Below, piece by piece: positions 1,024 through 23,290 of a stretch of DNA of 64,000 nt. Below the pieces are notes generated by a model that saw only the letters and a list, made by a program, of their open reading frames with translations, had not been told where the DNA came from and made no database searches. Position 1 is the first letter of the stretch; each line of letters begins with the position of its first letter. The position numbers were made by a program, and so were the translations under genes. Location: NCBI GenBank assembly GCA_024704765.1, contig JAKMXF010000066.1:751854-815853 (forward strand), in the 5' to 3' direction. The DNA comes from Oopsacas minuta (Eukaryota; Animalia; Porifera).

Positions 1024-4000
1024 GTGTGTTTTGTTGTCTATCTTAGCTGTAGTGATGAAATTTACCTGGAGTTTGTGTCAGGTTTACTCCTGTGTGTAGT
1101 CCGGATGTCTAACTACCTCATTGTCGTTGGATTAGGTCTTTGGAGTAGATATCTACTTGCTGGATATGAGTTAGATAGTAGAATTGAAATAATTTTAATT
1201 TTTTCTCTTATTTTAGAAAAGAGAGTCTAAGAAATTAGCTAAATTCTTAGCTGACTATGATGACGAACATGATGACCCAAAATATTATAAGTGAGCTTTT
1301 ACAATGTATGCTGGTTATAAGAACACCCTTGGGAGTAGCAATACATGTTCTCATAACCTGTATCAAATATGCAGGAATATATGAGGACCATGGTGTTCAT
1401 GTCCGGCAATGTTCTTATAACCAGCATCTGTTCTATCAGATAGATAGATTGATTTTTTTAACTTATCACCTTTTAGAGGAGGAAATTACGCTCGTAGAAG
1501 GAGAGATCGGGCCATTGAGAGTCAGGAAGATTCAGAAGATAGAGGCAGAGAGAAAACTGAAATAAATGAGATGAAAGATTTACAAATTAATGACATTTCC
1601 TATTCCAGGGATTCTATATCAATGTCTCAATCAGATTCTAATCCAATGGGATCTGTAAGTATACTGTATTGCTATAAATGGTTTTCATATGACTAATTCT
1701 TATGGATATATTCATACAGGACTCAGATGGGAGAGATTCTAGCCCTGACCATTTGAGTGACAAGGAAGAGGCAATACCATTAGAGAAACCCTCTCAAACT
1801 CAATTCTATTTCTCTTCTCATCATTCTAATTCTAATTCTAATACAGCTCAAACCTTTATGAAACATGAAGCTAAACAGGATATTCTTGTTCCTCCGGTAA
1901 ATATGTCTGTTTGCAATATAAATACAGTCAACTCCCGTTATGCCAAACATGGATATATCGAAGTCTATAATTGTACAAACATAGTCCCTTACCGTCAAAG
2001 TAACATATTTCATTCGTAATATCGAGGTGATTATCACTGTCCCTTCAGCTTAGATATAACCGAAGTTGATTGTATATTAATACGCAATATACATAGTGTT
2101 ACAAATTTGCTATATTTAGATAAAGAAAGAACACAACTTAGAGGATGTGAGACAATCCCTCCCCCCATCTGTCCTACTCACCCTCAACAAACCCCTGACA
2201 CATGAATACCCTGATCCTCACTCTACAGATCACGCAGATATAAAGCCTCAACAAATACTACAGAACTTTACCCCCGGGAAATTAACATTCGATCTCATCG
2301 CTCCGAATAAACTCAAGCTAGAGCCTAAACCTACTGACTCCGGTCGTAAACGAGCTGTCGATATTGCATTCAGTCTAGACGATGAACCTGACACTGAGAT
2401 AGTTCCAGTTTCAAAGTTCCCCAAACAAATCCCTCCCGAAATCCAGATGGATATGAGCTTCCCACCTCCTCTCTCCTCTGACAGTGGTATTGGTAGAATT
2501 CTAAACGAAGAAGATAAGAAGAAACAGACTAAGAAATTAATCAGCAGTATACCTACAAGTAAAGAGGAAGTATTCAAATATGATCTTTGTTGGAATATGA
2601 TTGATAAAGTTAGTTATTTATTTTGCGGACATCTGAGGACCGAATACTCTCTATCCCAGCGCTTCCCAATCCTTTTCACTCGTGTACCCCCTCCCATAGA
2701 CTGCCATCAAATTTTGAGTTATGGATTGGGAACCGCTGCTTGGGTATTAACTGAAGTAATAGGGTATGCATTTCGCCATCTATGACCCGTATTTATGTCC
2801 TTCCAGGAGATTAAATTTTGTGTGCTACTTTAGGCAATGATGGATAAACGGATTCGTCCTTGGATTAATAGGAAGATTGTTGACTATATTGGCGAGGAGG
2901 AACAAGCTTTAGTGGACTTCATCATAGAAAAGGTGTGAATTATTAATTATATGAATATACATTAAACTTTCTTTATAACGAAGTGCTCATGATCTTTGTT
3001 TAAAATCATTTACAGTATACTCAGCTTGATAGGGTCACATCGAGATCAGGGTATTTTGACCTGATTAACCGTTGGTCTATTAAGCTGGCTCTACTATACT
3101 TCCAAGCTATAGGGGGTAAAGAATCACTTCGTTAAAACGGGAGCTTCGTTATATCCGAGTTATAACGAGAATTTCCCTAAATTTTCTATGAGTATTATGA
3201 GGGGGTAGAAGTTTGAAAATATCCATATTTCTATTTCTACCTTCTGTAATATATTCTACTAGTAGAAAAGTGCTGATAGCTAATTACTAATATTACATGC
3301 AAATATTCTACTCAGATTGCTTATGTAAATTTATCTTATAGCTACAAGAAAAATGTTCTGCATCATCTCTACTACAAGATATCGTGATGGTTAGTTCTCT
3401 AGCAAGCATGTTTTGTGAATTATGCATAGTTTTATCATTTCCGTCATAATGTTGTTAAGTGGTATTTAGTTCTTCTATCCTAACAACAAATAATATTAAT
3501 TCCCGTAAGCCAATCAATTTCAATCTCAGATATGTAGGTAATAAGAACCAATGAAAACCATTATGTAACTTAACTAATTGAATGTCAGCCTAACTAAACC
3601 CTCAAATCTGATAGGTCAAAGCATTTGACATCCATCTCAGTGAGTTGTTCAGATATCGCAACACAAATGCCAAATGCCAAGTTTGTGGCTCTTACCAGTT
3701 TCTCAATCATTTTGGGCAAAACCATTGAAAATTGGAGTTCAGTTAACTTCCGGTATATCTAAGCTCAAGTGACCGTGATAATTACTTCGATATAACCGAT
3801 GATATATGTGTTACTTTGATGGTTTGGGACCATATTTGTATGATTACAGACTTCAATATAAGCGATTTCGTTATATACGTGTTCGATATAAATGCGAGTT
3901 AACTCCAATAGTATATATGATTCATATATTTGCTCTTTTAGGTCCTAGACGAAGATGCGGAGATGTTTGTTGTGAAAATGTGGCGATTAATGATCTACGA

Positions 4001-4037
4001 ATCAGAGGCTAGAAAATTGGGGATTTGCAAGTACTAG
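126..4037 (+). CDS. RBM25: RNA-binding protein 25 (RBM25/Snu71-like splicing factor), 3' part; the N-terminal RRM lies upstream of the window. Exons approx. 126-520, 620-716, 773-862, 1217-1290, 1477-1654, 1720-1896, 2120-2608, 2834-2932, 3342-3389, 3942-4037
   Basis: RE/RD-rich charged region, then LKSWDSRERKK and FLADYDDEHDDPKYY motifs, then a C-terminal PWI domain (IRPWINRKIVDYIGEEEQALVDFIIEK...VLDEDAEMFVVKMWRLMIYE). GT-AG junctions keep the frame to TAG at 4035-4037. Confidence 0.92.
947..1022. repeat. (GT)n microsatellite in an RBM25 intron
   Basis: About 76 bp of near-perfect GT dinucleotide; it produces the spurious VCVCVC ORF at 931-1230. Confidence 0.97.
1307..1430. mobile_element. 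MITE family B (terminal inverted repeat gtatgctggttataagaac...gttcttataaccagcat); further copies at ~11515-11605 (inverted) and ~14939-15063
   Basis: Inverted termini within the copy, and the same internal sequence recurs in three different introns/intergenic sites. Confidence 0.7.
1925..2073. mobile_element. MITE family A (Tc1/mariner-pogo-like; TIR cagtcaactcccgttat...ataacggagttgactg, TA-flanked)
   Basis: TA-CAGTCAACTCCCGTTAT at the left end and a complementary right end. Related copies at ~3740-3905, ~6782-6920, ~8530-8617, 12558-12713, 14191-14373, ~15944-15990, ~40255-40375 and ~58678-58825. Confidence 0.75.
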
Positions 4038-4859
4038 AATTGGTGATCTCTCGTCTCTACCATTATTTTAGGTTGTTATAATTAACAATTGACTCACAAA
4101 TTGGATTATTGAATTATTAAATGAATTACTGTTAAAGGTTCTGGAAGCAATATTTAGGATAATTAATACTTATTTACAAGAGTTTATTTACTGTTAACTT
4201 AATGGGGTTTGTTGTTTTGAGATTCTTCATAAAATCACATGTCTTTGAGATTGTTGAAACGAACTTGCCAAATTTCAATGCCTTTCTCTAACATAATGAA
4301 AGATCTCATTTTCTATCTTTTAGATATTTTATTATAATAAATGTAATATACTTCATTGGTGTTATAATTATATTAAACTATTGATTTCAGTGGAACCTGA
4401 ATTCTGGTTAAGCAATTGAACTGATTTTGCCTTGGACGAGTTGTAGTTGGCATGAATGTATTTTCAAGTTAGTAGTGTACAGCTTTTAACCACGGGGGTA
4501 GGGCGAACTGGTGCATTCTCCTCGGATTTATACATCCTGGTCCCTGATCTTCCAACGCCTCCTCAGTTGGTTAGTTGGAAATTGTTTCAGCTCCAATTCT
4601 CGTTATAACACCACTGCGTGTTTGTATTCCATTTGACGAATTTCTGCACATGGAAACCAGTACTAAAGGTTCCACTAACATTAAAGATGTGTATTATATG
4701 ATATTATTATTATTATGTTATTGTATGGGAAGAACTCTTGATGTTAATCTACAACTACAAATTACAGACCCTGCCTAAAAGATAGCTAAGAAGGTCTATT
4801 TATTTTTATTATTTGTATTTACTTATTTCTACTGATAACAAGGTAAGAGAGTATTAATA

Positions 4860-4985
4860 AGGTAGACTCCGGTTAATAGGGGGCACTTGGCCAGAAACAG
4901 AGCCATAATAGTGGTAAATTACTCCAGTTAATCGGGTCAAATGGCCTCTGGTTCCGATGTGACCCTATTAAGCTGAGTCTACTGT
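4860..4985. mobile_element. MITE family C (TIR gtagactccggttaatagg...cctattaagctgagtctactgta); related copy at ~3013-3100
   Basis: Inverted termini and a TA flank, with a similar element in an RBM25 intron. Confidence 0.6.
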
Positions 4986-5681
4986 ATTCAAATTTATCAT
5001 TTCACCATTTGGTATTATTAAGCAAACAAATCAATTGAGTTTAATATATAAACTATGTGTACTATTCCACAAGAAGGTAGTTAATGTAACCTTAATACTA
5101 ATCTTCGTAACATTTTGTATTTAAGCAAAACCACATCGAATTTCTATACTTACTAATTAATACACTAACTTACTACGAAACTCATTAATATTTGTGATAT
5201 TACGTATGGAATTCCTGTTTTTAGTCTAATAGTCCGCCAAATGTCTCAATCAATACTACTTGCTATGGTTGTCATGGCCAAATGCGCTATACTTTTGTAC
5301 TCACGATATAGGAATTTCGTACTCAGAGGTGTATATTACCTCAATTCTAGATATTAATTAACCGGAATTACTTATATTTCCTATATGGCTAATATTATAG
5401 GCGCCAAGCCCGCCTGGGCTTAGAGCTAATGCAAAATATGTGTGAGTCCTCCTGGATCGTTCAAATTGTTAGAAAGTTCGGCGCCTCTGGTTGGAATGCC
5501 TATCGGAGACTTTGATTGGTTTAGGAAAATGTTTATTGGAAAATAACTGAATTCCTTCTCACCCGAACCGTTGCTAACCCTTAGGAACTAATTCAATTAT
5601 AAATAATGCTATGCATATTAATACAAATATACAAATCAATACTCTAATATTTCTAAACAAGTTCTAACAGAAACAATACAT

Positions 5682-8600
5682 CTATTGAATTGGGACTTTG
5701 AGGGTGTTTACAGACAGTAAATTAGTTACTGTACCAATTCCCTTGGTTGTACCCTCTCTGAATAGTATCTTAGTACCAATACTCAGGTACTCTGGATGGC
5801 GAGTAAATCTGAAATGAACTTTCTTTTGATTTCCAGGTTCTAGTATATCCTATATGAAAATATTCAGTGGAATTACATAATTTGAAACTCGGCATGTGTG
5901 TGGAATAGGGTGTGTTTTGAAACATGTCCTAAGATCTAACCGATATCTCTTAAAGTCTCTGAGATAGGTGACAAAATATCTTAACCTATTAGATTTAAGT
6001 GTTCACTCAGCACATTTTGGTATTCATTCTTAAAGGACACTTTTGCAAGCAGCACACCTTAAAAATTACAATTTGTACCGACATCATACTGTGTGAAGTT
6101 ATGCATAGTGGAAGTGTGACACTGTGGATTTAAATCGTATACGTACCGAGGTGGATATCTTCAGGTCATAAACCCTTTGGCGAAATTTCAACTCTTAGGT
6201 TTGTGCTGTAGAGCGAACACGGAAGAATAATGGGCGACTATACGTACTGAAGTATAGTCGGAATAGCCAAAATCGAAGCGTGCATTTATCAGCTATTAAT
6301 ATATCAAATACATACACATATATTACTTACATCTTCAATCTGGAATATAATAGCCTGTTGTCTAATGCTATTGATGTATACTGTCAGTCTGAACTTGGAA
6401 GTTATAAAATTTGTAGTGTGATAAATCAAATATGTGTCAGCTACAAACTCCATACAAGATAGACAATCCCTCTCTAATCCAAGACCTACCATTCCCTATA
6501 GAATTCAAGGTGTTAGTTATATATTCGCTTTATCCAGAATTCGAGTTAGTTTCATTTAATAATTTCTAGAAATATATTTGTTAGTAACTTACAATTCTAA
6601 CTGAATCTCTGTGGAGATGTTTACTTGCTATACACGCTACTTGTCCCGGTCTAACCAAGCGGCAAGCTGCTCGCTTCCTCTGAATTGTGGAAATTTGGAT
6701 CTGTTTATAGCTGCCATCCTCTGCAGGACCAACTTTCATATAGTCCCCCTCTCTGATAATACCTCTATACATATTTCATAATACAGTCTGTTATATAGAA
6801 CACGGATGTAACGGAATATCCGCTCACATCAAAGTCTAAATTTATACAAATATGGCCCCAAACCGTAATGAATATTAAGCATATTCCCGCTATATCTTAT
6901 TGATATCGGAGATTTTCCTGATATTGATATTTGTAGAACTTTGGATATTTGATAAAAATAAATAACTAACTCCTTTAAGTATCCAGACACAACAGTGCCA
7001 GTGCCTGTTACAGAATATACTTCATCAATATGGAACTCGATTGGTTCCGCTTCTCTTCTCTCCACTTCAGGTTGTGTCATTTTTGGCAGGACTAGGTTTA
7101 GGAACCTGATTATTAGATCCAAATTGTGTCCGCTTACAGCTGATACAGTGAATATTGGTGCCACGCTAAATAGAGAATCAATAAATAGATTTAGATTTCA
7201 TGGCGTGCTAGCGTGCCTCGCTTGCGACAGCTTAGTAGACAGGACCTTACCTTTTCATGCTGATCGGCTATGTACAAGTTAATTTTCCAACATATTTATG
7301 ATATAGACTTACCTAAGAGTGTATATTTTAGCTGCAGCAAGATCTGCGTCATCCTCTGTCTCAATTAAGCTCGGTTTTAAATTACATCCCATCTGTTTAA
7401 GGGTGTCCTGCAGTTGTATTATAGTTTTCCTCAGCTGTTCCTTTGAGCATACATCTACTTTATTGATTATTAGACATATGGGAACTTTCAATGCGAGTGC
7501 ATAGCTCAAATGTTCATGGAATGTGCCAACTAAATAAATAGAAGAGTTTAAGAATTTCGAACAATGAAATAGTATTAATTTCTTAAAAGAGAATTTATAG
7601 AGGTAATTAGGGGGTGTAGCTCAGTGGTAGAGCGCTCGCTTCGCATGCGAGAGGCCTCGGGTTCGATCCCCGACTCCTCCAGTTCTTTTTAACCAAATCT
7701 CTTATTCATAGTCTTCCCCTACCTCATAATACTAAATTATAATTGAGATTGAAAATTGGTCCCTAATATGATTATTAGTAATATAACCATGGATAATTGG
7801 ACTAGTTCATCTGCGATTGTTGTTCTATGTCATTTTGAGGCATTCCTCGCTTGGTTGTAAGGGCTTTTCTATAACTTATAGAGGGACTATTATTGTCACA
7901 CACTACAACTTACCAGCTCCACAAGCCGCACTAACTACTAGCATAGTTATATCAGGATGTTGTCCTGTCAATCCAAATACTGTAGTCTTCATATACTTAG
8001 GATGGCCAGCTAAATCAATAAAGGTTATAAGCTTTGAAGATGCTTGGCATATCTCTTCGGTCTTTCTCATAGTTGAATAGTTTACCATCTAAGAAATTTT
8101 ACATATTTTAAGATAATGTAATAATGGGAGCAAATATGGACCATGGATACTGAAAGGAGTACATCAATTGTACCCTATTCCAATAAATGGCCACTTTCAC
8201 ACCTCGAAACGGATACAATTGGATTCTTGCCAACCCATTTACAAGAAATCCAGGACAAATTGTCTCCGTATGTTACTCACATTTCCTCCACAATCAAAGC
8301 CTAGAATTTCCTGAGAAATGGACGAAGTTCTGCCAGACTTCATTTCATGTAAATGTCTGAACAGATCAAGTCTAGCTCTCCCTCTTCCATTATCCGTCTC
8401 TCCATGAGTGAGTACTCCCAAGAGGGTACTCTTTCCAACTTCCATATGACCTGTCACGGCTATTCGGACTTCTATGAACTATAAAACACAAATACATTCA
8501 ACTCCAATTATATGAAAATACCTGCTTATATTTGAAATTGTCAATATAAGAAATAGTTCATCGGTAATAACCAAGTAATTATCGCGGCCCCTTGAAATTC

Positions 8601-10794
8601 GATATGACCGGAGTTGATTTTCGCGAAGAGGACACTCTGATCTAAATTTTGTAATTTTGAGCATATATAATGGACTCATACTTTTCGAGAAATGGTCATG
8701 CAAAGTGGTTGAGCCACAATCAATTGTTGTCCCCGGTTAATCGGGCCAAAATGGCTTGATCCGTAACATACAACTTCCATGGGTTTCCATAGGGGTACCA
8801 AACAACCGTGTTATGTATTTGTGAATCTACATTTCTTACTTGTTGGTCATCGGGCACCTTTCTGACATGAACTTCTGCTGAAAATCTTTTCTCTCCATTT
8901 TCATAGTCCACTGTTCTTGTACGAATTATCTTAATAGTGGCATCTAATCTAATTAACATATATATTGTAATGATGATGTCTATACTTATTAATGGTTTCC
9001 AACATTCACTCAGTTATAAATGCAGAAGTTTAACAAATTTTAACAATTTTTCGTTGCGATGAATTGTCCCCTATTTTGTGGAAAATTTGTTTGTTCGTTT
9101 GTGTTTGTTATAAATGTTATTGCACAAAAGGAAGGTGCCCAAGGAACGGATGATAGCGGGTCTTGTAGTATACTTTGTATTTCAATAATTGGAGGAATTT
9201 TCGGGGTTTTTATTTTGAGCGTTCCGTTCATGTTTGCTTTATATTTCTTAACGAAAATAATATTGAAAACAATAAATAAAGCTATTCGATTAAGGAAAAT
9301 AAACACAATTCGACCAAATTTGAGTTTTATTGAGATGAATGCGTTGGAGAAAAGCAATGAGAATAAACGAAGAAAAAGCTCAACTACAATGCTGGAAATT
9401 ATTGAGGAATTACCTGAGAATGAAAGTTGAGCATTTGTATTTATTTGTATTTTGTTTATTGCTTATTTAAACGAGAGATTCATTCTATTTCTCTGACTTG
9501 TTATTGTATGTCAGCAGTTAAGCAACCGAAAATCTTTACTGTATTACCTCGAATAGTAGCGGGGGTGATTATTCATATTTTAACACCCTTGTACAGGGGA
9601 CATAATATATAATCACATACTGCGTATCATGAGTCTATTCACCAACTCCCTAACGTGATTCTGTCCCAGTTTCCAGGGTTACCTGGTTGGTATTTGGCTA
9701 CACCCCTCAGCGAGGGATGCAATCATTAAATGGGCTACTATTCGATATATTCTTAGGATTCTTACAAATACGAAGGTGCTAACACAACATAGCGACATAT
9801 AATGCCTGTTGGAATGTTATGTAGTTATACAGTTAGTTTGCAACAGGTGACCTATCATAGGTAAAAGATGTTCAGATGATTACTCTTATCTCACACCTTA
9901 TGTCATTTCCTAGAACTATCCTTTAATTATTTTTCTAGATTTTCCTGGTATTTATACGTGAGTTTAGTGCCTATTTAAACTCGAACTATGTGACCCAATT
10001 AAAACGCAGCGTTGAACTTACCTCTCTGCCATTTCTTTGAGAGTTTCCAGAGAACTGTCCAAGTCTTCCTCACTTAACCCAGCCACGTTTCCCTTGTCCT
10101 CTACCCCTATTTGGTAGATAGCTTCCCCTCTCCCTTCCCTCAGTCTCCATTTCATCTGAGTGACGAGCTGGGCTAACCGAGCAGCTGTTGGATCGATTAA
10201 CTTCAACTAAAAACAATAAATGTAAAATTTAAATACTCAAATTTGTATTTTTACAAAATACTGTTATAGTAACTGTACTTCCTTATAAGGAAATATTACA
10301 TTTTTATTGAACCATAATCATTGAGAAAATACCCATATGTACAAGAGTTAAGGATACTTGAGAGTACTTGTCGATTCGGATTCTCATTATGGATGTAAAA
10401 CTTGGAAATTTTTGTATCAGCGTTGGCATTCGGTAAGCATACAAATATTGTGTTTATTTACTGAAAGATAAACAAATTGATTTGTAAACTAATGCAATTA
10501 CATATTAACCACCCACTTGTAACTATTTCCCTCAATATTATTCTTGAATCCCCCTCCCGTATGATTGTTGATAATAACTAACCTTGTACTCAATATTTCC
10601 TTCTTCAACCTATGAGAAGACAAGTAAACAAATATACTAGTAAACAAGTAAACAATATACTAGTAAACAAAAACAAATATTACCTCAGGGGGTAGTTGAT
10701 TATTCGTTACATTCAATTTCAACTCTGAAAACGTATCTTCAATGTCCGCCACTCCATCGTCATCCCCAAACAGAAAACAAAAACTTTCATCCAT
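5682..10794 (-). CDS. GTPBP2: GTP-binding protein 2-like translational GTPase (GTPBP1/2 family). Exons approx. 10794-10684, 10609-10583, 10206-10022, 8948-8840, 8478-8281, 8088-7914, 7529-7313, 7165-6971, 6764-6593, 6495-6331, 5849-5682
   Basis: [16 protein letters not shown]; [21 protein letters not shown]; P-loop [17 protein letters not shown]; [15 protein letters not shown]; G3 DLAGH; G4 NKVD; C-terminal [12 protein letters not shown]. Splice phases are consistent. Confidence 0.92.
7610..7681 (+). tRNA. tRNA-Ala, anticodon CGC, inside a GTPBP2 intron on the opposite strand
   Basis: GGGGGTGTAGCTCAGTGGTAGAGC...CTCGC-TT-CGC-AT-GCGAG...TCGGGTTCGATCCCCGA-CTCCTCCA. Cloverleaf with the G3:U70 alanine identity pair, A and B boxes, and one U6:U67 mismatch. 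Confidence 0.93.
7686..7690 (+). terminator. RNA polymerase III terminator (T5) downstream of tRNA-Ala
   Basis: TTTTT 5 nt after the discriminator base. Confidence 0.75.
9059..9430 (+). CDS. Candidate small single-pass membrane protein (123 aa) nested antisense in a GTPBP2 intron
   Basis: ATG-to-stop ORF with a hydrophobic N-terminus, short polar spacer, TM-like stretch [27 protein letters not shown] and basic juxtamembrane tail. No homology recognised. Confidence 0.45.
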   Translation: MNCPLFCGKFVCSFVFVINVIAQKEGAQGTDDSGSCSILCISIIGGIFGVFILSVPFMFALYFLTKIILKTINKAIRLRKINTIRPNLSFIEMNALEKSNENKRRKSSTTMLEIIEELPENES

Positions 10795-11669
10795 TATAAT
10801 AATAATAAATTTGTTTTAATAAGATTGGTATTTACATGTTTGTAATTTTGGTAGCTGTTTTGCTACAATTCAAATCCAAATTGTTGTTTGAATATTATAT
10901 CATCATTTTGAAACGATTTATGGTTTTAGCCCACTTTCGCTATTTGATTCTAATTATTCTCTTATATTTATGGGTCTGTATAAAGTTCTAAAGTTCTATT
11001 TTTAGTATCGAGTATAAAACTGCTTATCCAGCAAAACCACGTTAGTAATTATTCTATTCTAATTTCGACACATAAACGTGGAGGTCAATTGCATGATTCT
11101 TAATATTACTATATTGTAGAAAGCTTAGGGAGACTTGCCAACATTTTTCATGTGTCTCTGCGTTGTCGAGGTGTGTTGACATATGATTTCTGGTTGCAGT
11201 TAATCTAGTCATCCAATCTACTCACCACATTCCTTTAATTATGTACATATACATTTATATGTGAATTGCTGACACTTCCGTGTATGAATATACTTTATGA
11301 CACCTCTATATATGAGTATGATTTCATCTGTGCGCTATTTTGAGCTGTAATTGTTGTCTTATCAATATGGCACTTGTGTATTTATCTTAGTTTATTTCAA
11401 CTTTTGAACTTTATGGAAACAATAGTCCCTCAATCTGTATTTGTATAAAGTCGAATTGGAATTAGAATTATCGTAAAAGAACTAATATACTGCTGGATAT
11501 TAGTACCATCCTCTGGAAACTGTTCTCATATATTCCTGTATATTTATACCGGTTATAAGAGCATGTATGGTTACTCACAAGGGTGTTCTTATAACCAGCA
11601 TACACTTTATTAATATTGGATAACACATGCTTCTATTAGAGCTGAATATATCAGCAAAATTATCCTAGA

Positions 11670-14600
11670 ATGCAGCGTAGATATGACAGAACTTCAGACA
11701 TACAGCGACTCCGCTCTCATTACAGAGAAAGACCTTATGAATTCAAATTATGTTGTAACTATATTTGGCATTGTACACTAACATCTAAACTTGGCTGTGG
11801 ATCGTTTGGGTCGGTTTATTTCGGGTTCCACGAGTTGGAAGGATTCGAAGTAGCCGTCAAAGAAATTCCTAGAGAACTGTTCGCAAGAGATGATAAAGTT
11901 AAAATCAATTTACAGAGAGAGGTTGAGATACAACAATTGCTATCGTATTGCCCGTATGTAGTTAATTTGTATCATGTAGAGGAAATAGCTGCTGGCATAG
12001 TGATGATAATGGAGGTAAGGAATTTGCATAGTATTTGCTTGGATAGACATTTTGTTGTAAATAATCCACACCTTATATTTTTGTTATTATAAATCACTCA
12101 GGTGTAAACAATATTCCTAACTCACACCTTTCTCCATCACTTGATTTGACAATTTTTAATCATATTCATTTCTATTTTTATCTCAGTTTTCATTAACTTG
12201 ATCCCAAAAATAGATTTGTCGCTAATTTTAGCTCTCATTTACAACATAACTATTCATATAATCCTCCTAGGAATATTCTGCTATTACTCATGACAGATTA
12301 TACTATTTCTTAGCAGAATATTATTTAGCAAATATTGCGTTGGATTTCCTCTCAAACTTGTTGAGATATATTTGGGGAATATTAGTTGTTTTTTATAAAT
12401 TACCCTGTACAGACTTTGATGAGAAATTTGTACCTAGTGTGATGATAGGGTTCATGCGTCATACTTGACTTCTGAACACGCGCAAGCTCAGGTGTGAGGC
12501 TATTGAAGAGTCTAATCCCTTCTTTATCACGGATGAAAGTCTTAAAATTATATACTACAGTCAATTCCCGTTACGTGTTATTTAGAAGCTCAAGACAACC
12601 GTGATAATTAATAAGATATAACCGATAAAACTACATTACTTTAACGGTTGGGACCATATTTATGTAATTTATAACTTCGATATACCCGTGTTTGATATAA
12701 CCGGAGTTGACTGTTATTTCTGAAACCTTAGTATGAGTTATAACAACAGATTACAAATATTTTATTTATTGATGTCATTATATAGTTCTGTGACACAGAC
12801 CTCGAACAATATCTGAAGACACACAAATTCAATGAAACACAAATCAAGAGTTTCCTTAAGCAGCTATCAATTGGAGTTAAAGCCATGCATGATCAGGGTA
12901 TAATACCTCTAGTTATCAGTATTGCATATTAACGCAATGATTGAATAATTATTTGCATTTATATGAAAAAATGTAGCAGAGTTCATTCTCGAATACATAA
13001 CTCAACATTCTGTGGATCACATCCCATAGACTGTAATACAAATTTTGAGATCCTACAGACCCTGCCCCTGCTGTCGTCTACGGACCTCACGTTGGGAACC
13101 GCTTCCCTAGATACGCTATAATATCATAGGAATGTATGATTAATTACCCTAATAGGTATAGTACATAGAGACATCAAACCGCAGAATATTCTACTGAAGT
13201 TATACTGTAACGATCTATTTGAGATAAAGATAGCAGATTTTGGTTATTCCAGACATTACTTGAAAGGAGAAGGCACTAAGAACTTCATTGACATGAATTC
13301 AGTAGCGGGTACTCCTGTATTTATGGCCCCTGAAGTTCTGTATTGTGTGGTTATGCCAGGAGGACATTACGATCATACAGTAGACATGTGGAGTGTTGGA
13401 GCATTGCTGTATAGGGTATTGGTTGGTAAGTGCGGGTTCTTTCTATTCTGTGAGAAAGGACTTCCTGGAACAATTCAGAAGGTGATACCTATTCTCAAAA
13501 GTAAGGGAGATGCCATAGCCTTTGAGGTAAGTTGTTACAGTGCACCAAACAGCACTGCTCCTATTGCAAATTGTTCGGATTAGTGAAATGCATGTGTAAT
13601 ATTGTATTATGTATTTGTCCGCAGTAGAATTGGTATTTAGAACATTCTAGAACATTTTTCAGAGGTGCTTGATTAATGACATTTTATACTTCTGTTTAGA
13701 TTCAACGTAACAGCAGACCACATTACATATACGAACTACCCTCTACTGTAGATGTTATGATATCTGAATCTATGAAAAGTCAACTCAATAAGATCCTGAA
13801 AGAACTCCTCAAGGTGTGAAAATATGCATATAGTAGAGTTAATAATATGTTCAACAGTTTGTCAGGCGCGAACTCCTCTGTACAATTACTATTCAATTCT
13901 GTAGGTTGATCCAGCACATAGAATTACAGTAAATGAATTCTATACATTTGTGGATGATTTAGTACAGACGAATTTAGAAATGGTTGATGTACTCAGTGGG
14001 AGAAGTTGTAAGATCCCTTTAGAGTCAAATGTTACATTAGATACTCTCAAATTTGAGGTGAGAATGTTGTTGTTGTTGTTGTTGTTGTTGGTGGTGGTGG
14101 TGTTTTACATAGACTTGTAATATTCCACACATATGTCGAATTTCAAATTTGTAGCTCTTACCAGTTCCTCAAATGATTTTGAACGAACTACAGTCAACTC
14201 CGGTTATATCAAATCGATATACCCGCTGATATCGAATCGATATACCCGCTTATACATCAAAGCCTTAAATTGTATAAATATTGTCCCAAACCGTCAATGT
14301 AACATATATTTAATTGGTTATATCGAGGTGATTATCGCGGCCCCTTGAGCTTCGATATAACGGGAGTTGACTATACATAAGTGTTACTACAATAATCCTT
14401 GTAGGTAACCCAATCACTTGGCATAACACGTGAGAACCAAATCCTTTTGTGTGATTCACCAGCTTCCAAATCTAAACTAATCTCTCAGGAAGATCTTATA
14501 TTCTTTCTACGATGTGCTACTAAGAATCTGGGCCCCATCATTTTATACGTGATAGATAAATCTACAGTAATTGGTAGCTCAACTATAAACATACAATTTC

Positions 14601-16723
14601 CATCTTTGTCAGAGATGAATGATATTTTATTAAAATGTGATACTATTAAGCGTAATGTAAATGGCGAGTTGAAAACATATGACATGAGTTTACCGAATAT
14701 TTGTGTTTCTGTGGTGAAAGACATGGGAAAGAATCAAGAATTACAAATGAAAGCTTTGCAGTCGTTCACATATTTCATGACTACTTCACAAGATAGCTAC
14801 GAAGCAGCGAAAAGTAAATTTGAAACAAAGTTCAAAGTTCTTGAAGCGAAAGTTAGTTTTCTGGCTGATTGTCTGTTAATGGATATGGAAAGTTTGAAAA
14901 ATAATGAGCAATACAAACAACGGGTAAATATTAATATAGTGTATGCTGGTTATAAGAACACCCTTAGGGGTAGCAAGACATGTTCTTATAACCGGTATAA
15001 ATACACAGGAATATATGAGAACCATTTCCCAGAGGATGGTGCTTATATCCGGCTTCTGCTGTATATTTTCTATTATACCAAATTATGTTTATTTGTTTGT
15101 TTGTTTGTTATAGGTTGAGAATCTTACAACACTGTGTCACTCCCTACGGCACATGTTAAGAGAGGTAATTATTGTTATTTTGAATATAAGTGGGTTCCAC
15201 CAGGGGATCCATAGGATCTAGAAAATTGTATTACAGTCTATGGGAGGGGGTCAACTAGTGAAAATGGTTGGGAACTGCTAAAATAGTCAATAAGCATATT
15301 TATTACCCAATCTAGGCCCAGTTACCAGTAGGGTCAATAGAAGAAGAATTCAAACGGTTAAACCGTAGTTTATTGAAAGAGATAGACAAATGTATGGATG
15401 TAGAATACAGTAAGGATTATCAGAATATTCTAGCACAGAGCCAAAAGATACAATACTTCTCTCCACCTTACGTACAGAGAGTTAGAGAAATGGTTGAAGT
15501 TATTGTTAATAAATATTCTGAATTCCTACTTAAAATACAGGTTTGTGAGTACAGTTAACTCCCGTATACTTGGTTACAACTGAAACTGAGAACGGTTTTG
15601 TGGAGGTTACACTTTTGTTTACAAGTATAACTATATTATTACTCCTTAGACGAGGCTGCAGACATCATTTTCTATAATGAGTGAGATATACTCTCTCACT
15701 TCAAAGCTAAACGAATTAGCTGATAACTTGTCCTCTGTATACACACGGAAGTTGATGGATGTACAGACCCATTGGAGACAGGAAATACTCTCTCTGGTGG
15801 GTGGGGAGGCCACCTGTCAGTCGCCCGAAGCTTCTGACGAAGAGCCCCTGACTCGACATAAAAGGCGGGCGAATCTACAGCAACAGTTGGAGTATAAGAA
15901 TAGAGAAAATGCTAAATTAGTTGATAAATGTGAGGAATTATTACAGTCATATCGAAGCAATTATCACTGTCCCTTGAGCTTTGATATGACAGGCATATAA
16001 ATAGGCTTTACAATGTGTTATTGTATTTTAGTTGAAAAGCTCAGATCTCAATTAAAGAAAGCAGAGGCTAGAGCAATCTCTGCAGAAGAGCTTCTATCTC
16101 AAAAAACTGAATTACTGCAAGATCACGAGCAATTAGAAGTATTCTATTCGTGTATGAAACTGATACAATCTATATGCCCAAATTCACCCAAAACAAATTC
16201 TGGGAATTTAGAGTTAGAATTTAGCGGTCTTTGTTTGAAAGAACCTGCCATATCTCCGGTGCAAAAGTTACAGGAAAGTTTGAGAGATTTGTCACAGATT
16301 GATATTAATAAACTAAAAGTACAAATTGAAAAGAAATTGGATAATAAAACCGCCAATTCGAATGGATTAATTACAGTTTCGAATTTCAAAAAAGGAGATT
16401 TAGTACTGTTTTTACCTACGAAACATCAACCTGGATACCACGCTATGCCTCAGGCATTCACTACTTTACAAGACACGATATACCTCGATAAATCATGCTA
16501 CGGTTCATTCGGTGTGGGGGAAAATGAACCTCTACGGACATGGCTAATCGGGCGATGCACTTCGAATTTATTTCCAGAAACAACTGGACCTAATTGTGTC
16601 TACCCAGCTGGTAAAGTTAAACAAAATTTTTATACAATTACAGCTGAAGCGAGCGAGTTTGTTTCAAGCGAACCTCGTAGACGGACTTCAAGTCGTAATT
16701 TAAACGTTCCAGTTAAAAACTAG
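11670..16723 (+). CDS. Ser/Thr kinase (ULK/IKK-TBK1-like) + ubiquitin-like domain + helical/coiled-coil region + Atg11/RB1CC1(FIP200) Claw-like C-terminus, ~950 aa. Exons 11670-12014, 12786-12897, 13156-13526, 13700-13813, 13905-14057, 14405-14923, 15114-15164, 15316-15540, 15650-15929, 16032-16723
   Basis: Complete kinase motifs (GCGSFG, VAVK, HRDIKPQN, DFG, APE, DMWSVG). All nine GT-AG introns join in frame. The last exon has ITVSNFKKGDLVLFLP...WLIGR...NFYTITAE, resembling the Atg11/FIP200 C-terminal domain. Confidence 0.82.
12558..12713. mobile_element. MITE family A copy in kinase intron 1
   Basis: TA-CAGTCAATTCCCGTTA...ATAACCGGAGTTGACTG; inverted orientation relative to the 1925 copy. 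Confidence 0.75.
14191..14373. mobile_element. MITE family A copy in kinase intron 5
   Basis: TA-CAGTCAACTCCGGTTATATC...GATATAACGGGAGTTGACTA-TA; near-perfect TIRs. Confidence 0.8.
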
Positions 16724-16852
16724 ACATTTCTACACACATATTTATATATTTATTTTTAGTAACATTCATCTATTTATTACAGATTCTTATATTTCTGTCT
16801 ACAGTCATACAACTAGCTAATTTCTACTTTCTATTTCTATTAATTATTCTGT

Positions 16853-19800
16853 TTATTTATTTGGCTTTTTGATCACAAAGTCGAGTTCCTTCTTTCCCAG
16901 CTCTTCTCCTTTAGGAAATGCATCGCAGATTGTGTTGCAAACTCCTAAAATGAGGAATAATTATACATTTTTGGGAGATAATCGTTGCTAGAATATTCAG
17001 CTTGTTGTAATTGAATTAAGACTTACTTATTTTACAAAAATATTTTCCGACTATCCATGGTTTACCGGTGCCTATTTCCCAATCCACTTCCCAGGAGCCG
17101 AGTTTCAAAGGAGTCCAGAGCTGCAGTTCAACTGGAGAATACAAAATGCAATAATTGAAATAAGTATAGACACATTAAGGCCCTTGTTAATGAGAAACTT
17201 GTTTCAGCTCCACCTGATGTCAATCTAAGCATAATCTCATTATACGTGTAGTGGAGCTGAAAAAGTTTTCCTAATACCTCTTACCTGTGCTGTTAGTCTT
17301 GTTTTGGGGACAATCAAACTTAAACTGAACTACTCCTACCTCAGAGCTATCCACCACCACTGCTTTTATCTTAATATCTTTTCCTATACAATAATAGTAT
17401 TGAAATTACATAGCAAATATCAATTTGGTTATTCTTTGGGAGATAGTGTCTAAGACTAGGGAGACAAGTAACAACGAGTTAAGGTCAGCTGTTTCCAACC
17501 TGGGGCCCCTTGGTGGTTCACGGACGACAGCAAGGGGTCCACAGGAGAAATGGTTGGGAACCGCTGAAGTAAACAAACAAACAAACAAACAAACAACAAA
17601 TAATTGAGTTCAACTTCAAATTATATTAGAGTTTGCGGGCATGAAACACATGACTCGTTCCCAAAGCACTCCTGCAAACTTTAAAATCCAGCAGGAACAA
17701 ACAAATAAACCCAAACAAACAATAACAACAGGACAATCAACACACAGAAAGCGTCCATATTCCGCCTACACGAAGCTACACGATACCGTCAATAGTATAG
17801 ACACCCCGGCATCTAACCGTGAGCAATGGTGGCGAGCAGAGCTCCGAGAGACACCTGTGTCCACACGGTATCATATCAAAGATTTTGTACAAGATATTTC
17901 TGATCGGAATGATACCGTATCATTCAGAGATGTAGGTCGTGAGAAGATAATACCGTCCGCACAGACACACGGGGGGCTTCTCTTACCCGGGGCATACCAT
18001 AAGAGTAGATATCCTGATGATTATTTGTCCTCAAATAGGTTTTCGTATAATTTCAGGTCAGTAGAGCGTGATAAACTTCCTAAACTAGGTCATGGCCACG
18101 CGGATAAAGAAGTAGATGTTCCTCCTAACCAGTACGACGTAGTTAGCTACACCTCCTCTGTCGGGAATAAGGACGCTGTATTCAAGTCGACAATACAGAG
18201 AGAACCGTTCCGTGGCAAAATCGGACCTGCTCCTGGACAGTACCATAATCTCGTGAAAGGAGAGCCCCCAAGTTCTAGTTACATGTTCAAGAGTCGCGTT
18301 CCTCGACTAATGTCTTCTACAACTCGTGTACCAGGACCTGGTAGTTATAATCCTAAAGATGTTGTATAACTCTTCTCTCATTATTATACTGCAATATGTC
18401 TCAGTTTCAGTTTCAGTTTACATTAGAACTCGGGAAAGACGTAGCCAAAGTATGTCTTATCCAAATATTTAGTATAGTAGAGTTCCCTTATTAGCAAGTT
18501 CGCATATAAGCAAGTTTTCTCGTGCAAAAACCCGACTTGCTAATAAGCAAACTCCACTTGTATATGAAATTGTGATCCGTTCTATGTACTAACTGAGTGT
18601 ACGTCTTAAGCCGAGTTCTACTGTAATTACAGTTACATTTTGACACCTGGCTCAGAGAGTTGTGGTGATATCTCATAGATATTAGGATATGTTCCTAGAT
18701 TAATCACATTCCACAAATTTCTAATTTATAGCTCTTAACAGTTACTCAATTAATTCCCGGAAAAACTGCGGGTCTAAATATAGAGTAGACTTAACCAGAG
18801 TTATTTATATAACATAATTATCGTTTGAATAATCCCTAATTGGCATAAAATTATAATAAACAAGTACCTAGGATAATTGGAGTAGAAACAGTAGCTGAAA
18901 CGAGAGAAGCTTTGCCTTTCTCCTTGGGACAGTCATTGATCTCTTCACAGAAGAAAGCATAGTTCAGTTGTGTACTAAAGATATTGAGAGTGTAATTATT
19001 AAATTACGTTCCTCTCTTTGGCAATATTCTCAATTAAGTGGAGCTATTTAACACCAAGGTCTAGTCGAGCCTGAATTTTCAAATTTGGGTCAATGCCCCC
19101 GTTGTCACTGTATTTAAGGCCGTGGGGGCTAAAATAAATCCACTTGGGAACCCATCGAAGGAATAATGAAACATTTATTCCCCGTACGAGGAAATAGTTC
19201 AGAGTTCTATCTTTAATGTCTGCTATGATTCTGGTCTTGGGGCAATTGACTCGAAACTAAATAGAGCGAATTCTTAGTCACAAACGAAAATAAACCTCCA
19301 CTAATGTGAATTTAGTAGAGACAGGGAAACGGGTAGCATTGTCCGGTCCCTATTTGCAGAGAATACACTCTGTAACTTACTTGTTAAGATGTTTCTTAAG
19401 CTCATCAATACCAACTGCAGTACATGCTACCATGCATATATCTCCAGCTAATGTGCTATTAACTGCCTTGTGTATTAATTCACACATTCCTGCACAAGTA
19501 CCAACAGGTGTGATATCTATCAGATATGGTTAATTATTAATATCAATAATGATCACTTTAGGTAATACCCTCTATTTGCTATTGATAGATTAACACTTTG
19601 AATCAGGGAATTATGTACACTCGGTTAGTACGTGCTAATTTTCTTACTTGCCACCACGGGTGAAAGAAACGCGTGACGTAGCATATATTTGGGACATTAA
19701 CCTCAACACATGTCCGATAAAGCGAAACATCCGGACAAAAACAGGACAGTTGGCAAGTATGAAATATATTTATTTACCTAAAGCTGCTTTTAGAATTTCT

Positions 19801-21289: not shown

Positions 21290-23290
21290 TCACACCTGTG
21301 GAGATACTTTGTTCTCTTTGAAGGGTTCTGGAGAGTATACTACTGAGTCAGAAAGTGGGTTTTGTATGACGGTAGATTCATTGGCTTTCTTCTTGTCTAA
21401 TTCAGCAATTGTAGGATTATACCCAGGTATCTGTTTGGGTGAATATGACCATCTCTTCGTAAAGAAACAGAACAAGATTACTATGAATATCAGGATAAGC
21501 AATACGAGTAGAACGAAAACTACAACACCGAATATGATGAGAATGAATTCAGTCTTACCAAAGTTGAAGATTTGAGGATTGACAGGAGCGATATCACAGT
21601 CACTACTGTTGGTAGGGGATTTGTTGAATCCATCAAAACATGAACAATCGAATGAACCAATTATGTTATTACAATTGTGTTCACAACCTCCATTATCTAC
21701 CCCGCATTCATCTACGTCAATGCATTTTGTTCCATTTTCAGTGTATCCTTGGATACAAGAACATACGAATGACCCGTTGGTGTTGGCACAATTCTGTTCA
21801 CAACCTCCATTGTTTACCTCGCATTCATCTATGTCAATGCATTTTGTTCCATTTTCAGTGTATCCTTGGAAACATGAACATACAAATGAACCGATGGTGT
21901 TGGTACAATTCTGTTCACAACCTCCATTATCTATCCCGCATTCATTCACGTCATTACAGAACGTTTCATTGAGATTAATGTATCCTTCACGACAATCACA
22001 TGTGTAGGAACCAATTGTGTTAGTACAGTTACCTTGACATATAATACTACTGTCTTCACACTCATCTATGTCTGAACATACGAAACTACTATCATCGTAG
22101 AAGGCACGTTCTGGTGGATAAGTACAGTTACAACCATCTTCTGTATCAACTCTATACCACGTATTATTGCCAGGACATACTATTGAATGATTGAAGCACT
22201 GATAACTGGGGTTACTACAGTTTACATAAATGCTGGGATCGTCTACTTGAAGGCTTGAATTTCCTGAGCAGTAACTGCTTGGGTCTAATTCTATTCGGAT
22301 CCTATACTCATTTTCTATTTTTGACATCCACTCCATTTCACAGGTGCAATCAAATGAAATTTCTCTCATCTTTAAATCTGATAATCTTGGGAGTTGTTGA
22401 AAAATTTCTGGATTCAATAACGCAGGATTATAATTCTCTATGTCTAGGTCTCTAATTCTCTTCGCTACTGTAAGAGTTGATAGGAGAAATGATGGATTGT
22501 TATTCAACCGTATGGTTTCTAAACTTTCCAGACCGATGAATGTATACTTTCCAACTTTGGTTATGTCATTACCTGACAGATCCAGAAATTCCAAGTTCAG
22601 TAAACCCAGGAAAGTGCAGTCATATAACTCATTAATCTTATTCCCTTTAAAGCTCGAATATTTTAACATGTTTGTTTCGTTAAAAGAATCGGCCATTATT
22701 TTTTTTATATTACCATATTCCCAATAAAATACCTCTAATTTCTCTAGTCCCCCTATGATACTCCGATCTATGACACCATTTCCCTCCGTTATTGATGATT
22801 TGGATACTCGTATCTCTTCTAAATGTATATTCTCAGTGAAAAATGGCATTAAATTCAATCCTAAGTGATCCGCGTAGATATCCTGCATGTTCGGGAAATA
22901 TGTGAAAAAGTCGTTATGATTAATGAATACTTCATTGATTCTAAATTCTATACTTATAATATCAGAATTTATCAAAGAAGTTTCAACATGACACGGTGTG
23001 ACGAACTCATTATTCATAGCCAAAGCTATTATATTAATCGGTAAGCTTAGATTCAATGTAACGCCTTCCCCCCCTTGTGTAATGTAAATTCTGAGGTAGG
23101 GCTTATTTCCTTCAGAACATTCGTACATTTTTTGTTGTATTGCATCTGTGTCTTGTCCATGAATACGACAATCCTTACTAAATCTACCATCATTGCAGGT
23201 TATTTCGCTATTTCCACAGTTGCCTTTGACCAGTACAAAACAATATAATATGAGTATTATAAGGATAATTACCTTGTTAGTTGATATCAT
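21290..23290 (-). CDS. Intronless LRR - LRRCT - 4x calcium-binding EGF - TM receptor (666 aa)
   Basis: Signal peptide; LRRs (LEFLDLSGNDITKV, LETIRLNNNP); LRRCT FDCTCEMEW; cbEGF D[IV][DN]EC...GSF.C.C..GY; TM FILIIFGVVVFVLLVLLILIFIVILFCFF; short tail. Confidence 0.88.
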   Translation of the reverse strand: MISTNKVIILIILILYCFVLVKGNCGNSEITCNDGRFSKDCRIHGQDTDAIQQKMYECSEGNKPYLRIYITQGGEGVTLNLSLPINIIALAMNNEFVTPCHVETSLINSDIISIEFRINEVFINHNDFFTYFPNMQDIYADHLGLNLMPFFTENIHLEEIRVSKSSITEGNGVIDRSIIGGLEKLEVFYWEYGNIKKIMADSFNETNMLKYSSFKGNKINELYDCTFLGLLNLEFLDLSGNDITKVGKYTFIGLESLETIRLNNNPSFLLSTLTVAKRIRDLDIENYNPALLNPEIFQQLPRLSDLKMREISFDCTCEMEWMSKIENEYRIRIELDPSSYCSGNSSLQVDDPSIYVNCSNPSYQCFNHSIVCPGNNTWYRVDTEDGCNCTYPPERAFYDDSSFVCSDIDECEDSSIICQGNCTNTIGSYTCDCREGYINLNETFCNDVNECGIDNGGCEQNCTNTIGSFVCSCFQGYTENGTKCIDIDECEVNNGGCEQNCANTNGSFVCSCIQGYTENGTKCIDVDECGVDNGGCEHNCNNIIGSFDCSCFDGFNKSPTNSSDCDIAPVNPQIFNFGKTEFILIIFGVVVFVLLVLLILIFIVILFCFFTKRWSYSPKQIPGYNPTIAELDKKKANESTVIQNPLSDSVVYSPEPFKENKVSPQV

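Follow-up and report, generated by a model that had tools for sequence, protein, structure and literature searches.

Selective autophagy starts when cargo receptors unite a kinase (ULK1, aided by TBK1) with a scaffold (FIP200 or Atg11), and to our knowledge the kinase and the scaffold reside on separate proteins in every organism studied. A gene of the glass sponge Oopsacas minuta raises the question of whether the two can be a single polypeptide. The gene lies in a stretch of 64,000 nucleotides (assembly GCA_024704765.1, contig JAKMXF010000066.1, positions 751,854 to 815,853), here called the window, and an initial annotation made from the letters of the stretch had read it as one gene fusing a ULK/TBK1-like kinase to a scaffold that ends in an Atg11/FIP200-like Claw domain. 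We found that one expressed glass-sponge gene joins a kinase, a probable ubiquitin-like segment, predicted helices and a Claw, in that order. Domain, profile and structure searches used exon pieces or P0006, the orthologue from the glass sponge Vazella pourtalesii, in place of the whole spliced protein.

In the rebuilt splice model, ten exons on the plus strand (11670-16723), with GT..AG at every intron, form one open coding sequence of 2862 nucleotides, or 953 amino acids and a stop, which agrees with the ten canonical exons and the frame of about 950 residues proposed initially; the peptide strings quoted at that time were all recovered in the translation. The sole boundary needing care was intron 9, whose donor (GTGAGG, after 15929, phase 1) is joined to 16032. 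The stretch is present in four sequencing runs of one sample (X1-X4), of which X1-X3 are DNA runs collinear with the genome and X4 behaves as an RNA run, holding about half of the sampled words and giving spliced contigs. In the X4 contigs, introns 1, 2, 3, 4, 7, 8 and 9 are spliced out exactly as predicted, at a depth of about 760-930; among these joints is 15929/16032, which leads from the helical region into the Claw exon (about 930). X4 depth was of the same order in every exon, with low values in most introns. For introns 5 and 6 the joints are unlisted in X4 because repeats at 14057-14109 and 15080-15117 were skipped. Both junctions are covered by P0006, a Trinity open reading frame (ORF) of 635 amino acids from EukProt, found in the 90% cluster of the closest database match to exon 10, which begins in exon 5 at kinase subdomain XI, continues unbroken over exons 6-10 and ends at the same C-terminus. 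Spliced RNA of the sponge itself in this way supports seven of the nine introns, and the Vazella transcript the other two. The link from the kinase exons to the last exon was seen joint by joint, within exons 1-5 and within exons 7-10, and no single X4 RNA contig of this organism reached from exon 1 to exon 10.

An orthologue is present in ENA assembly ERZ25069837 (loci L008/L009). When rebuilt, L008 proved to have ten exons whose phases and splice sites are those of the window gene, and an open frame of 955 amino acids with 82.6% identity; exon 1 is 97% identical in amino acids and 81% in nucleotides. Synonymous divergence (dS) between the two is saturated or 1.26, and nonsynonymous divergence (dN) is lowest in the kinase (0.043), followed by the ubiquitin-like segment (0.09), the Claw (0.16) and the helices (0.18); dN/dS of the Claw is 0.13. 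Because exons, phases and splice sites are the same in L008 while synonymous sites are saturated, the 953-residue frame is far beyond chance, and by this pattern of substitution the whole kinase-Claw arrangement is under purifying selection. Complete orthologues, which we call type A together with the window gene, are also found at L010 (ERZ25072730), L012 (ERZ25766962) and L014 (ERZ25072740); of the four other assemblies with such orthologues, the exon-by-exon check was made on one, that of L008.

A second type, B, is collinear with type A and has the same domain order in L001, L005 and L006/L007. Its identity to type A ranges from 52% over the kinase, through 33-34% over the Claw and 28-36% over the ubiquitin-like segment, down to 13-17% over the helices; it is an older, divergent type. 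Both types occur together in two samples, with contigs of similar coverage, and the two are therefore paralogues. Oopsacas minuta itself has a type B copy, L016 (GCA_024704765.1, JAKMXF010000363.1, 10001-13403), which the public annotation divides between two neighbouring genes: a product of 423 amino acids called 'Inhibitor of nuclear factor kappa-B kinase subunit beta-like' (P0019), and an unnamed Claw-bearing product of 426 amino acids. Homology is continuous across the annotated split and is detectable from the DFG motif on; a search of the 10 kb upstream found neither an N-lobe nor an HRD loop, so that this copy is either kinase-dead or truncated, or else interrupted by an assembly gap. 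Public annotation thus missed the architecture, dividing the Oopsacas paralogue in two and naming it IKK-beta-like. Overall, the same domain order was seen at L001, L005, L006/L007, L008/L009, L010, L012, L014 and L016. A phmmer search of exon 10 against 1.84 billion representatives returned four relatives only, all of them fragments, and no FIP200, and a homologous-protein search with P0006 found none; as far as seen, the family members that can be identified all come from glass sponges (Vazella and Oopsacas). As to the alignments, A9 keeps one misplaced type B stretch of 28 amino acids, and in A3 two short window pieces are partly misplaced. One further locus, L003 (ENA ERZ20067936, 8188-10520), holds the C-terminal half only (equivalent to amino acids 535-882); its reading frame shifts within the Claw exon, and a 382-residue ORF lies upstream at the place of the kinase. 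L003 may represent a pseudogene or a copy that has been disrupted. The G+C content of type B loci (L001, L005, L006) is 43-51%, against 35-37% for type A (L010, L012), even within the same assemblies; that of the Oopsacas type B locus is 37%.

The C-terminal similarity to the Atg11/FIP200 Claw, on which the initial annotation turned, was found by Pfam, by profile searches of the PDB and by predicted fold, which agree. Exon 10 matched the Pfam family ATG11 (PF10377) at E 3.3e-8, its 34.1 bits exceeding the curated cut-off of 22, and the cut-off was also passed by three independent relatives (P0006, P0004 and P0003, 27.1-33.7 bits). A Claw profile of four sequences, searched against the PDB, retrieved the FIP200 Claw in all eight of its matches (E 0.085-1.2), and one of 13 rows gave 6gma at E 0.0033, with eight of nine matches being FIP200. 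With three sequences (A7) the profile missed FIP200, the single-sequence PDB search of exon 10 found neither FIP200 nor TBK1, and an Atlas search of exon 10 gave nothing specific. The AlphaFold2 model of window exon 10, made with the 13-row alignment, has a predicted local distance difference test (pLDDT) value of 71-84 over exon residues 115-208, and when this model was compared with the PDB by Foldseek the 24 best matches were without exception the FIP200 Claw (E 3.4e-6 to 5e-4), with template-modelling scores, normalised to the target, of 0.55-0.73. The matched entries were 6GMA, in which the FIP200 coiled coil and Claw were crystallised together, 7EA2, 7CZG, 7D0E, 9J54, 7CZM, 8YFK-M, 6DCE and 9D34; the next fold, S1/OB, began at E 0.018. 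By all three lines, the C-terminus of the window protein is a true FIP200/Atg11-type Claw, contrary to the lack of profile or structural similarity that the initial annotation had named as a refutation.

What such a Claw might bind was read from the HMMER alignment to 6gma, in which the loop alignment is uncertain, together with the residue roles given by Zhou et al. 2021 (PMC7946963). The hydrophobic pocket of FIP200 is kept, Y1564 being replaced by F, F1574 by Y and F1582 retained as F. With the same uncertainty of the loop, K1569 is G and R1573 is V in the window Claw, and the other basic residues of FIP200 are replaced as well (K1568 by T, K1581 by N and R1584 by T); type B has an R at the position of K1569. 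In FIP200, K1569 and R1573 are needed for binding to the motifs of CCPG1 and optineurin and bind the phosphorylated or acidic residues of the FIP200-interacting region (FIR), and both are missing in yeast Atg11 too (PMC7946963), so that they are a feature of vertebrate FIP200. Because the pocket hydrophobics are kept and the basic residues lost, the ligand would not be read through phosphoserine. It is probably a hydrophobic motif that does not depend on phosphorylation, and it may differ from the ligands of FIP200. The Claw is followed by a tail (16658-16720, SSEPRRRTSSRNLNVPVKN) that hardly varies among the six type A sequences; neither type B nor FIP200 has it. The RRRTSS motif of this tail looks like a target of basophilic kinases and could serve as a regulatory switch beside the Claw.

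The likeness to FIP200/RB1CC1 and Atg11 therefore comprises a C-terminal Claw, by Pfam, profile and predicted fold, that comes after helices and has a conserved hydrophobic pocket; a possible ubiquitin-like domain and an ATG17-like or TBK1-like helical region in the same order may extend it, as a lead only. The differences are a complete protein kinase on the N-terminus of the sponge protein, the lack in type A of K1568, K1569, R1573, K1581 and R1584, the RRRTSS tail, and size. Yeast Atg11 has 1178 amino acids. The scaffold part of the sponge protein has about 620, against 1594 for FIP200 (PMC7337493).

The intact kinase of the initial annotation was borne out. Pfam Pkinase was matched in exons 1 (E 6.5e-10), 2 (E 0.018) and 3 (E 6.3e-23), and the GxGxxG loop, the VAVK lysine, the alpha-C glutamate and the HRD..N, DFG and APE motifs are present and invariant in five aligned family members, which by these motifs shows a catalytically complete kinase. 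Its catalytic core, proposed to be ULK-like, held up as such: the single-sequence PDB search put ULK2 (57.7 bits) and ULK1 (55.9) narrowly ahead of the next kinase (55.7), and the family profile gave them a clear lead (ULK2 75.5, ULK1 70.7, phosphorylase kinase 62.9 and ULK3 49.3 bits). TBK1 and IKK chains were absent among the best 60 PDB kinases for the core with either the single sequence or the profile, the lowest listed having 45.4 and 46.6 bits. The N-lobe, which had also been called ULK-like, did not fare so: searched alone, it ranked AMPK/Snf1 best, and ULK was not listed. No Pfam or PDB match was found for the C-lobe segment of exon 4, a profile of the C-lobe insert (from which the GDAIAF stretch was excluded) retrieved only noise from the PDB, so that these searches lent no support to the TBK1/IKK-like C-lobe insert of the initial annotation. 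An Atlas search of the kinase core gave nothing specific. By similarity, then, the kinase is ULK/CAMK-like with a ULK1/2-like core and is not detectably IKK/TBK1-like. It shares with ULK1 and ULK2, its closest matches among solved kinases over the core, the HRD.KPQNILL loop and the G[ST]P.[FY]MAPE activation segment. It differs from them in an N-lobe that is not specifically ULK-like, in a longer C-lobe insert, in the ubiquitin-like segment placed directly after it, and in having no Pfam domain other than ATG11 on its C-terminal side and no detected ATG13-binding region; the tandem-MIT (EAT) domain that binds ATG13 was not found by Pfam in exons 1-6 and 8-10 or in P0006, which covers exon 7.

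Between the kinase and the Claw the evidence is thinner. A conserved segment of about 85 amino acids (VDDLVQT...) follows the kinase, and a small profile made from it retrieved ISG15 in nine of ten matches, weakly (E about 0.9), and no TBK1 or IKK; nor was there a Pfam match to PF18396 (TBK1_ULD). The segment is thus probably ubiquitin-like, as first read from the sequence, and the further proposal of a ubiquitin-like domain (ULD) of the TBK1/IKK type found no match. The roughly 390 amino acids after it are drawn as long helices by AlphaFold2 in the P0006 model (mean pLDDT 45, shallow alignment), which agrees at low confidence with the proposed helical scaffold; its likeness to FIP200 is weak, and comes from a feature search with a language model (Atlas) that used the Claw-free residues 1-370 of P0006. 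There, ATG17_like clusters ranked first (0.86 with 180 and 0.85 with 174 shared features), a cluster also carrying ubiquitin scored 0.73, and a cluster with ATG17_like and ATG11 stood at rank 5, a borderline lead that would point to the Atg11/FIP200 family independently of the Claw. The single-sequence PDB search with P0006 found neither FIP200 nor TBK1. Shi et al. 2020 found the FIP200 N-terminal domain and the TBK1 ULD plus scaffold to be structurally alike, with an NPIF motif at the ULD-scaffold interface of both (PMC7337493). At the corresponding place, the end of the ubiquitin-like segment, type A has GPIILYV and type B DPNLFLL, which as a counterpart of NPIF is suggestive only.

By analogy with these systems we are inclined, though not strongly, to see the window protein as a single-chain kinase-plus-scaffold unit of selective-autophagy initiation. 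In such a unit the Claw would engage a cargo receptor or an adaptor through a short linear motif of that partner, and the helical region would dimerise, as does the coiled coil of FIP200, and as Atg11 does for Atg1; in Schizosaccharomyces pombe, Atg11 is described as activating Atg1 by dimerisation (PMC7511232). Clustering on cargo would pair two kinase domains and lead to autophosphorylation of the activation loop, and the activated kinase could then phosphorylate receptors or downstream autophagy factors on site. The protein might then, as first suggested, need no adaptors and start autophagy by itself. Its output could be autophagosome initiation, TBK1-like receptor phosphorylation or immune signalling. 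A role in defence, similar to xenophagy, would be favoured over bulk autophagy because of the cluster of receptor-like genes, including one with leucine-rich repeats (LRRs) and epidermal growth factor (EGF)-like repeats, and because of the paralogues.

Several of our observations weigh against a unit for autophagy initiation. The Claw lacks K1569 and R1573, within the uncertainty of the loop alignment, and the N-lobe taken alone is nearer to AMPK/Snf1 than to ULK. For the middle of the protein, some 480 amino acids, the AlphaFold2 model had a mean pLDDT of 45, and Pfam found no TBK1_ULD, TBK1_CCD1, IKK SDD or ATG17_like in the exon pieces or the relatives. The Atlas match to ATG17_like is itself borderline by the calibration of the tool, with five of the ten best named matches in agreement. 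In addition, L016 apparently lacks an N-lobe and a catalytic loop, and kinase activity would then not be indispensable in every member.

One rival is an artefact, in which a kinase gene and, next to it, a small Atg11-like gene were mistaken for a single gene. The absence of a single RNA contig spanning exons 1 to 10, the unreported joints of introns 5 and 6 and the division of the Oopsacas type B paralogue into two public gene models would all fit with it. However, the frame is open through ten exons both here and in the rebuilt L008, the whole protein is matched at four further loci, RNA joints tie exons 1-5 and 7-10, X4 depth is alike over all exons, the Vazella transcript carries exon 5 from subdomain XI to the Claw in one ORF, and the public gene split falls within continuous homology. 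We give this explanation hardly any credence, and it is close to refuted. A more substantial rival is that the protein is an innate-immune kinase of the IKK/TBK1 type in which a Claw, binding adaptors like NAP1, SINTBAD or optineurin directly, stands in place of the usual C-terminal region for adaptors, with immune signalling in place of autophagosome initiation as its output. The order of kinase, ubiquitin-like segment and long helices is that of TBK1/IKK-epsilon and IKK-alpha/beta, in which the helices form a dimerisation scaffold. Further in its favour are the resemblance of the FIP200 N-terminal domain to the TBK1 ULD plus scaffold (PMC7337493), the P-I/L-hydrophobic motif (GPIILYV, or DPNLFLL in type B) where TBK1 and FIP200 have NPIF, the public name 'IKK-beta-like' of the Oopsacas paralogue, the position of the window gene among receptor-like genes, and the solved structure of a NAP1 motif on the FIP200 Claw (7ea2). 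We nevertheless regard it as unlikely, if well short of far-fetched: no TBK1 or IKK chain appeared among the best 60 solved kinases with single sequence or profile, Pfam was without TBK1_ULD, TBK1_CCD1 and IKK SDD, the ubiquitin-like and C-lobe insert profiles retrieved no TBK1 or IKK, and the public name is automatic. In contrast to TBK1 and the IKKs, to which no sequence similarity was detectable in kinase, ULD or scaffold, the sponge protein ends in a Claw and not in an adaptor-binding coiled coil or a NEMO-binding domain.

It could also be that Claw and helices were taken over as an all-purpose module for dimerisation and peptide docking, with the kinase acting in a pathway other than autophagy, for example below the neighbouring receptors. 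The basic residues that read a phosphorylated FIR are not conserved, the family is confined, as far as seen, to glass sponges, and the conserved RRRTSS tail is absent from FIP200 and type B, all of which such re-use would accommodate. Yeast Atg11, an autophagy scaffold, bears on the first of these points. It also lacks K1569 and R1573 (PMC7946963). In the window protein the pocket hydrophobics are kept (Y1564 as F, F1574 as Y and F1582 as F), the kinase core is nearest to the autophagy kinases ULK1/2, and the Claw-free part leads to ATG17_like clusters in Atlas, so we think re-use outside autophagy improbable. An evolutionary reading would make the arrangement of kinase, ULD-scaffold, coiled coil and Claw an ancestral form kept by glass sponges, of which TBK1 (kinase, ULD and scaffold) and FIP200 (ULD, scaffold and Claw) would be trimmed descendants. 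We consider this a long shot. The sponge protein might then be a living example of the link that Shi et al. 2020 proposed from electron cryomicroscopy (PMC7337493), which we put forward just as diffidently.

Full-text literature searches (TBK1/Claw/invertebrate, hexactinellid autophagy kinases and Atg11/Claw kinase fusions) found no description of a kinase-Claw protein. This accords with the remark of the initial annotation that the architecture was not recognised from characterised animals; it is a new domain architecture made from known domains. How much of the initiation assembly is needed is an open question that is usually approached by artificial tethering. The sponge gene offers a natural experiment, with a kinase, a predicted dimerising scaffold and a predicted receptor-binding Claw on one polypeptide of about 950 amino acids, and hence a minimal system in which to test cargo-driven kinase activation. 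A Claw with a non-basic pocket would be useful for studies of motif specificity, and the arrangement is of direct relevance to the suggestion that TBK1 and ULK1-FIP200 are related by evolution. Its interest for the autophagy field is that the kinase-plus-FIP200 logic, proposed on structural grounds, here takes the form of one protein; the few taxa in which it was seen temper that interest.

Features of the kinase-Claw gene, with positions in the window and the evidence for each assignment (AF2, AlphaFold2; Ubl, ubiquitin-like; aa, amino acids)
Feature	Position	Strand	Evidence
Whole coding region	11670..16723	+	Splice model, translation, RNA joints, orthologue with identical structure
Exon 1: N-terminal 34 aa and kinase N-lobe	11670..12014	+	GCGSFG 11793-11810, VAVK 11850-11861; Pkinase E 6.5e-10
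Exon 2: kinase hinge and start of C-lobe	12786..12897	+	Pkinase E 0.018 (short piece); X4 joints 12014/12786, 12897/13156
Exon 3: catalytic core	13156..13526	+	HRDIKPQN 13164-13187, DFG 13236-13244, APE 13326-13334; Pkinase E 6.3e-23
Exon 4: family-specific C-lobe segment (YIxELP..VD)	13700..13813	+	Conserved in types A and B
Exon 5: end of kinase and start of Ubl-like segment	13905..14057	+	AHRIT 13914-13928, VDDLVQT 13950-13970; family alignment, weak ISG15 matches
Exon 6: remainder of Ubl-like segment (to ~14569; GPIILYV 14531-14551) and first long helices	14405..14923	+	Type B alignment, AF2 secondary structure of P0006, Atlas lead to ATG17_like
Exons 7-9: helical scaffold and coiled-coil region	15114-15164, 15316-15540, 15650-15929	+	X4 joints; P0006 AF2 helices, low confidence
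Exon 10, first part: helices into Claw	16032..16375	+	AF2 helices, low pLDDT; 6GMA Foldseek alignment of 135-141 columns
Claw domain, aa ~839-932	16376..16657	+	PF10377, AF2, Foldseek, profile
Pfam ATG11 match, aa 819-901	16316-16564	+	PF10377
Basic Ser-rich C-terminal tail and stop	16658..16723	+	RRRTSS 16676-16693; type A conservation

Downstream of the kinase-Claw gene lies an ORF of 242 amino acids (17641-18369, plus strand) that is rich in Ser, Pro and Tyr and was assigned no domain. ORFs of 241-248 amino acids occur at the same relative place behind the orthologues L008-L015, and it is probably a conserved neighbour gene. Farther on, a single-exon ORF of 666 amino acids (21290-23290, minus strand) was read by eye as having a signal peptide, LRRs, several calcium-binding-EGF-like repeats and a transmembrane helix; synteny is conserved, since similar LRR/EGF_CA ORFs stand beside the orthologues in L008, L009, L014 and L015. 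Adjoining the gene on its downstream side, at about 16730-17100 and beyond, is a very highly expressed minus-strand transcript with an X4 depth of 23,000-44,000, against about 1,000 for the kinase gene, and a CT..AC joint at 16943/17026 that marks a minus-strand intron.

The locus is also rich in repeats. A (GTT)n(GGT)n microsatellite (14058-14108) starts at the donor of intron 5 and is one reason for the unlisted joint there. Just upstream of the start codon is a repeat of about 125 nucleotides (11492-11617), with an inverted copy (89% complementary) at 14927-15053 in intron 6; since its depth in the DNA runs is about 5,000, against about 100 in the flanks, it is a very high-copy element similar to a miniature inverted-repeat transposable element or a short interspersed nuclear element. 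Other high-copy repeats, with DNA-run depths of 1,300-8,800, lie at 12852-13062, 14210-14403 and 15205-15255 (introns 2, 5 and 7), and 13012-13062 and 15205-15255 form an inverted repeat pair.

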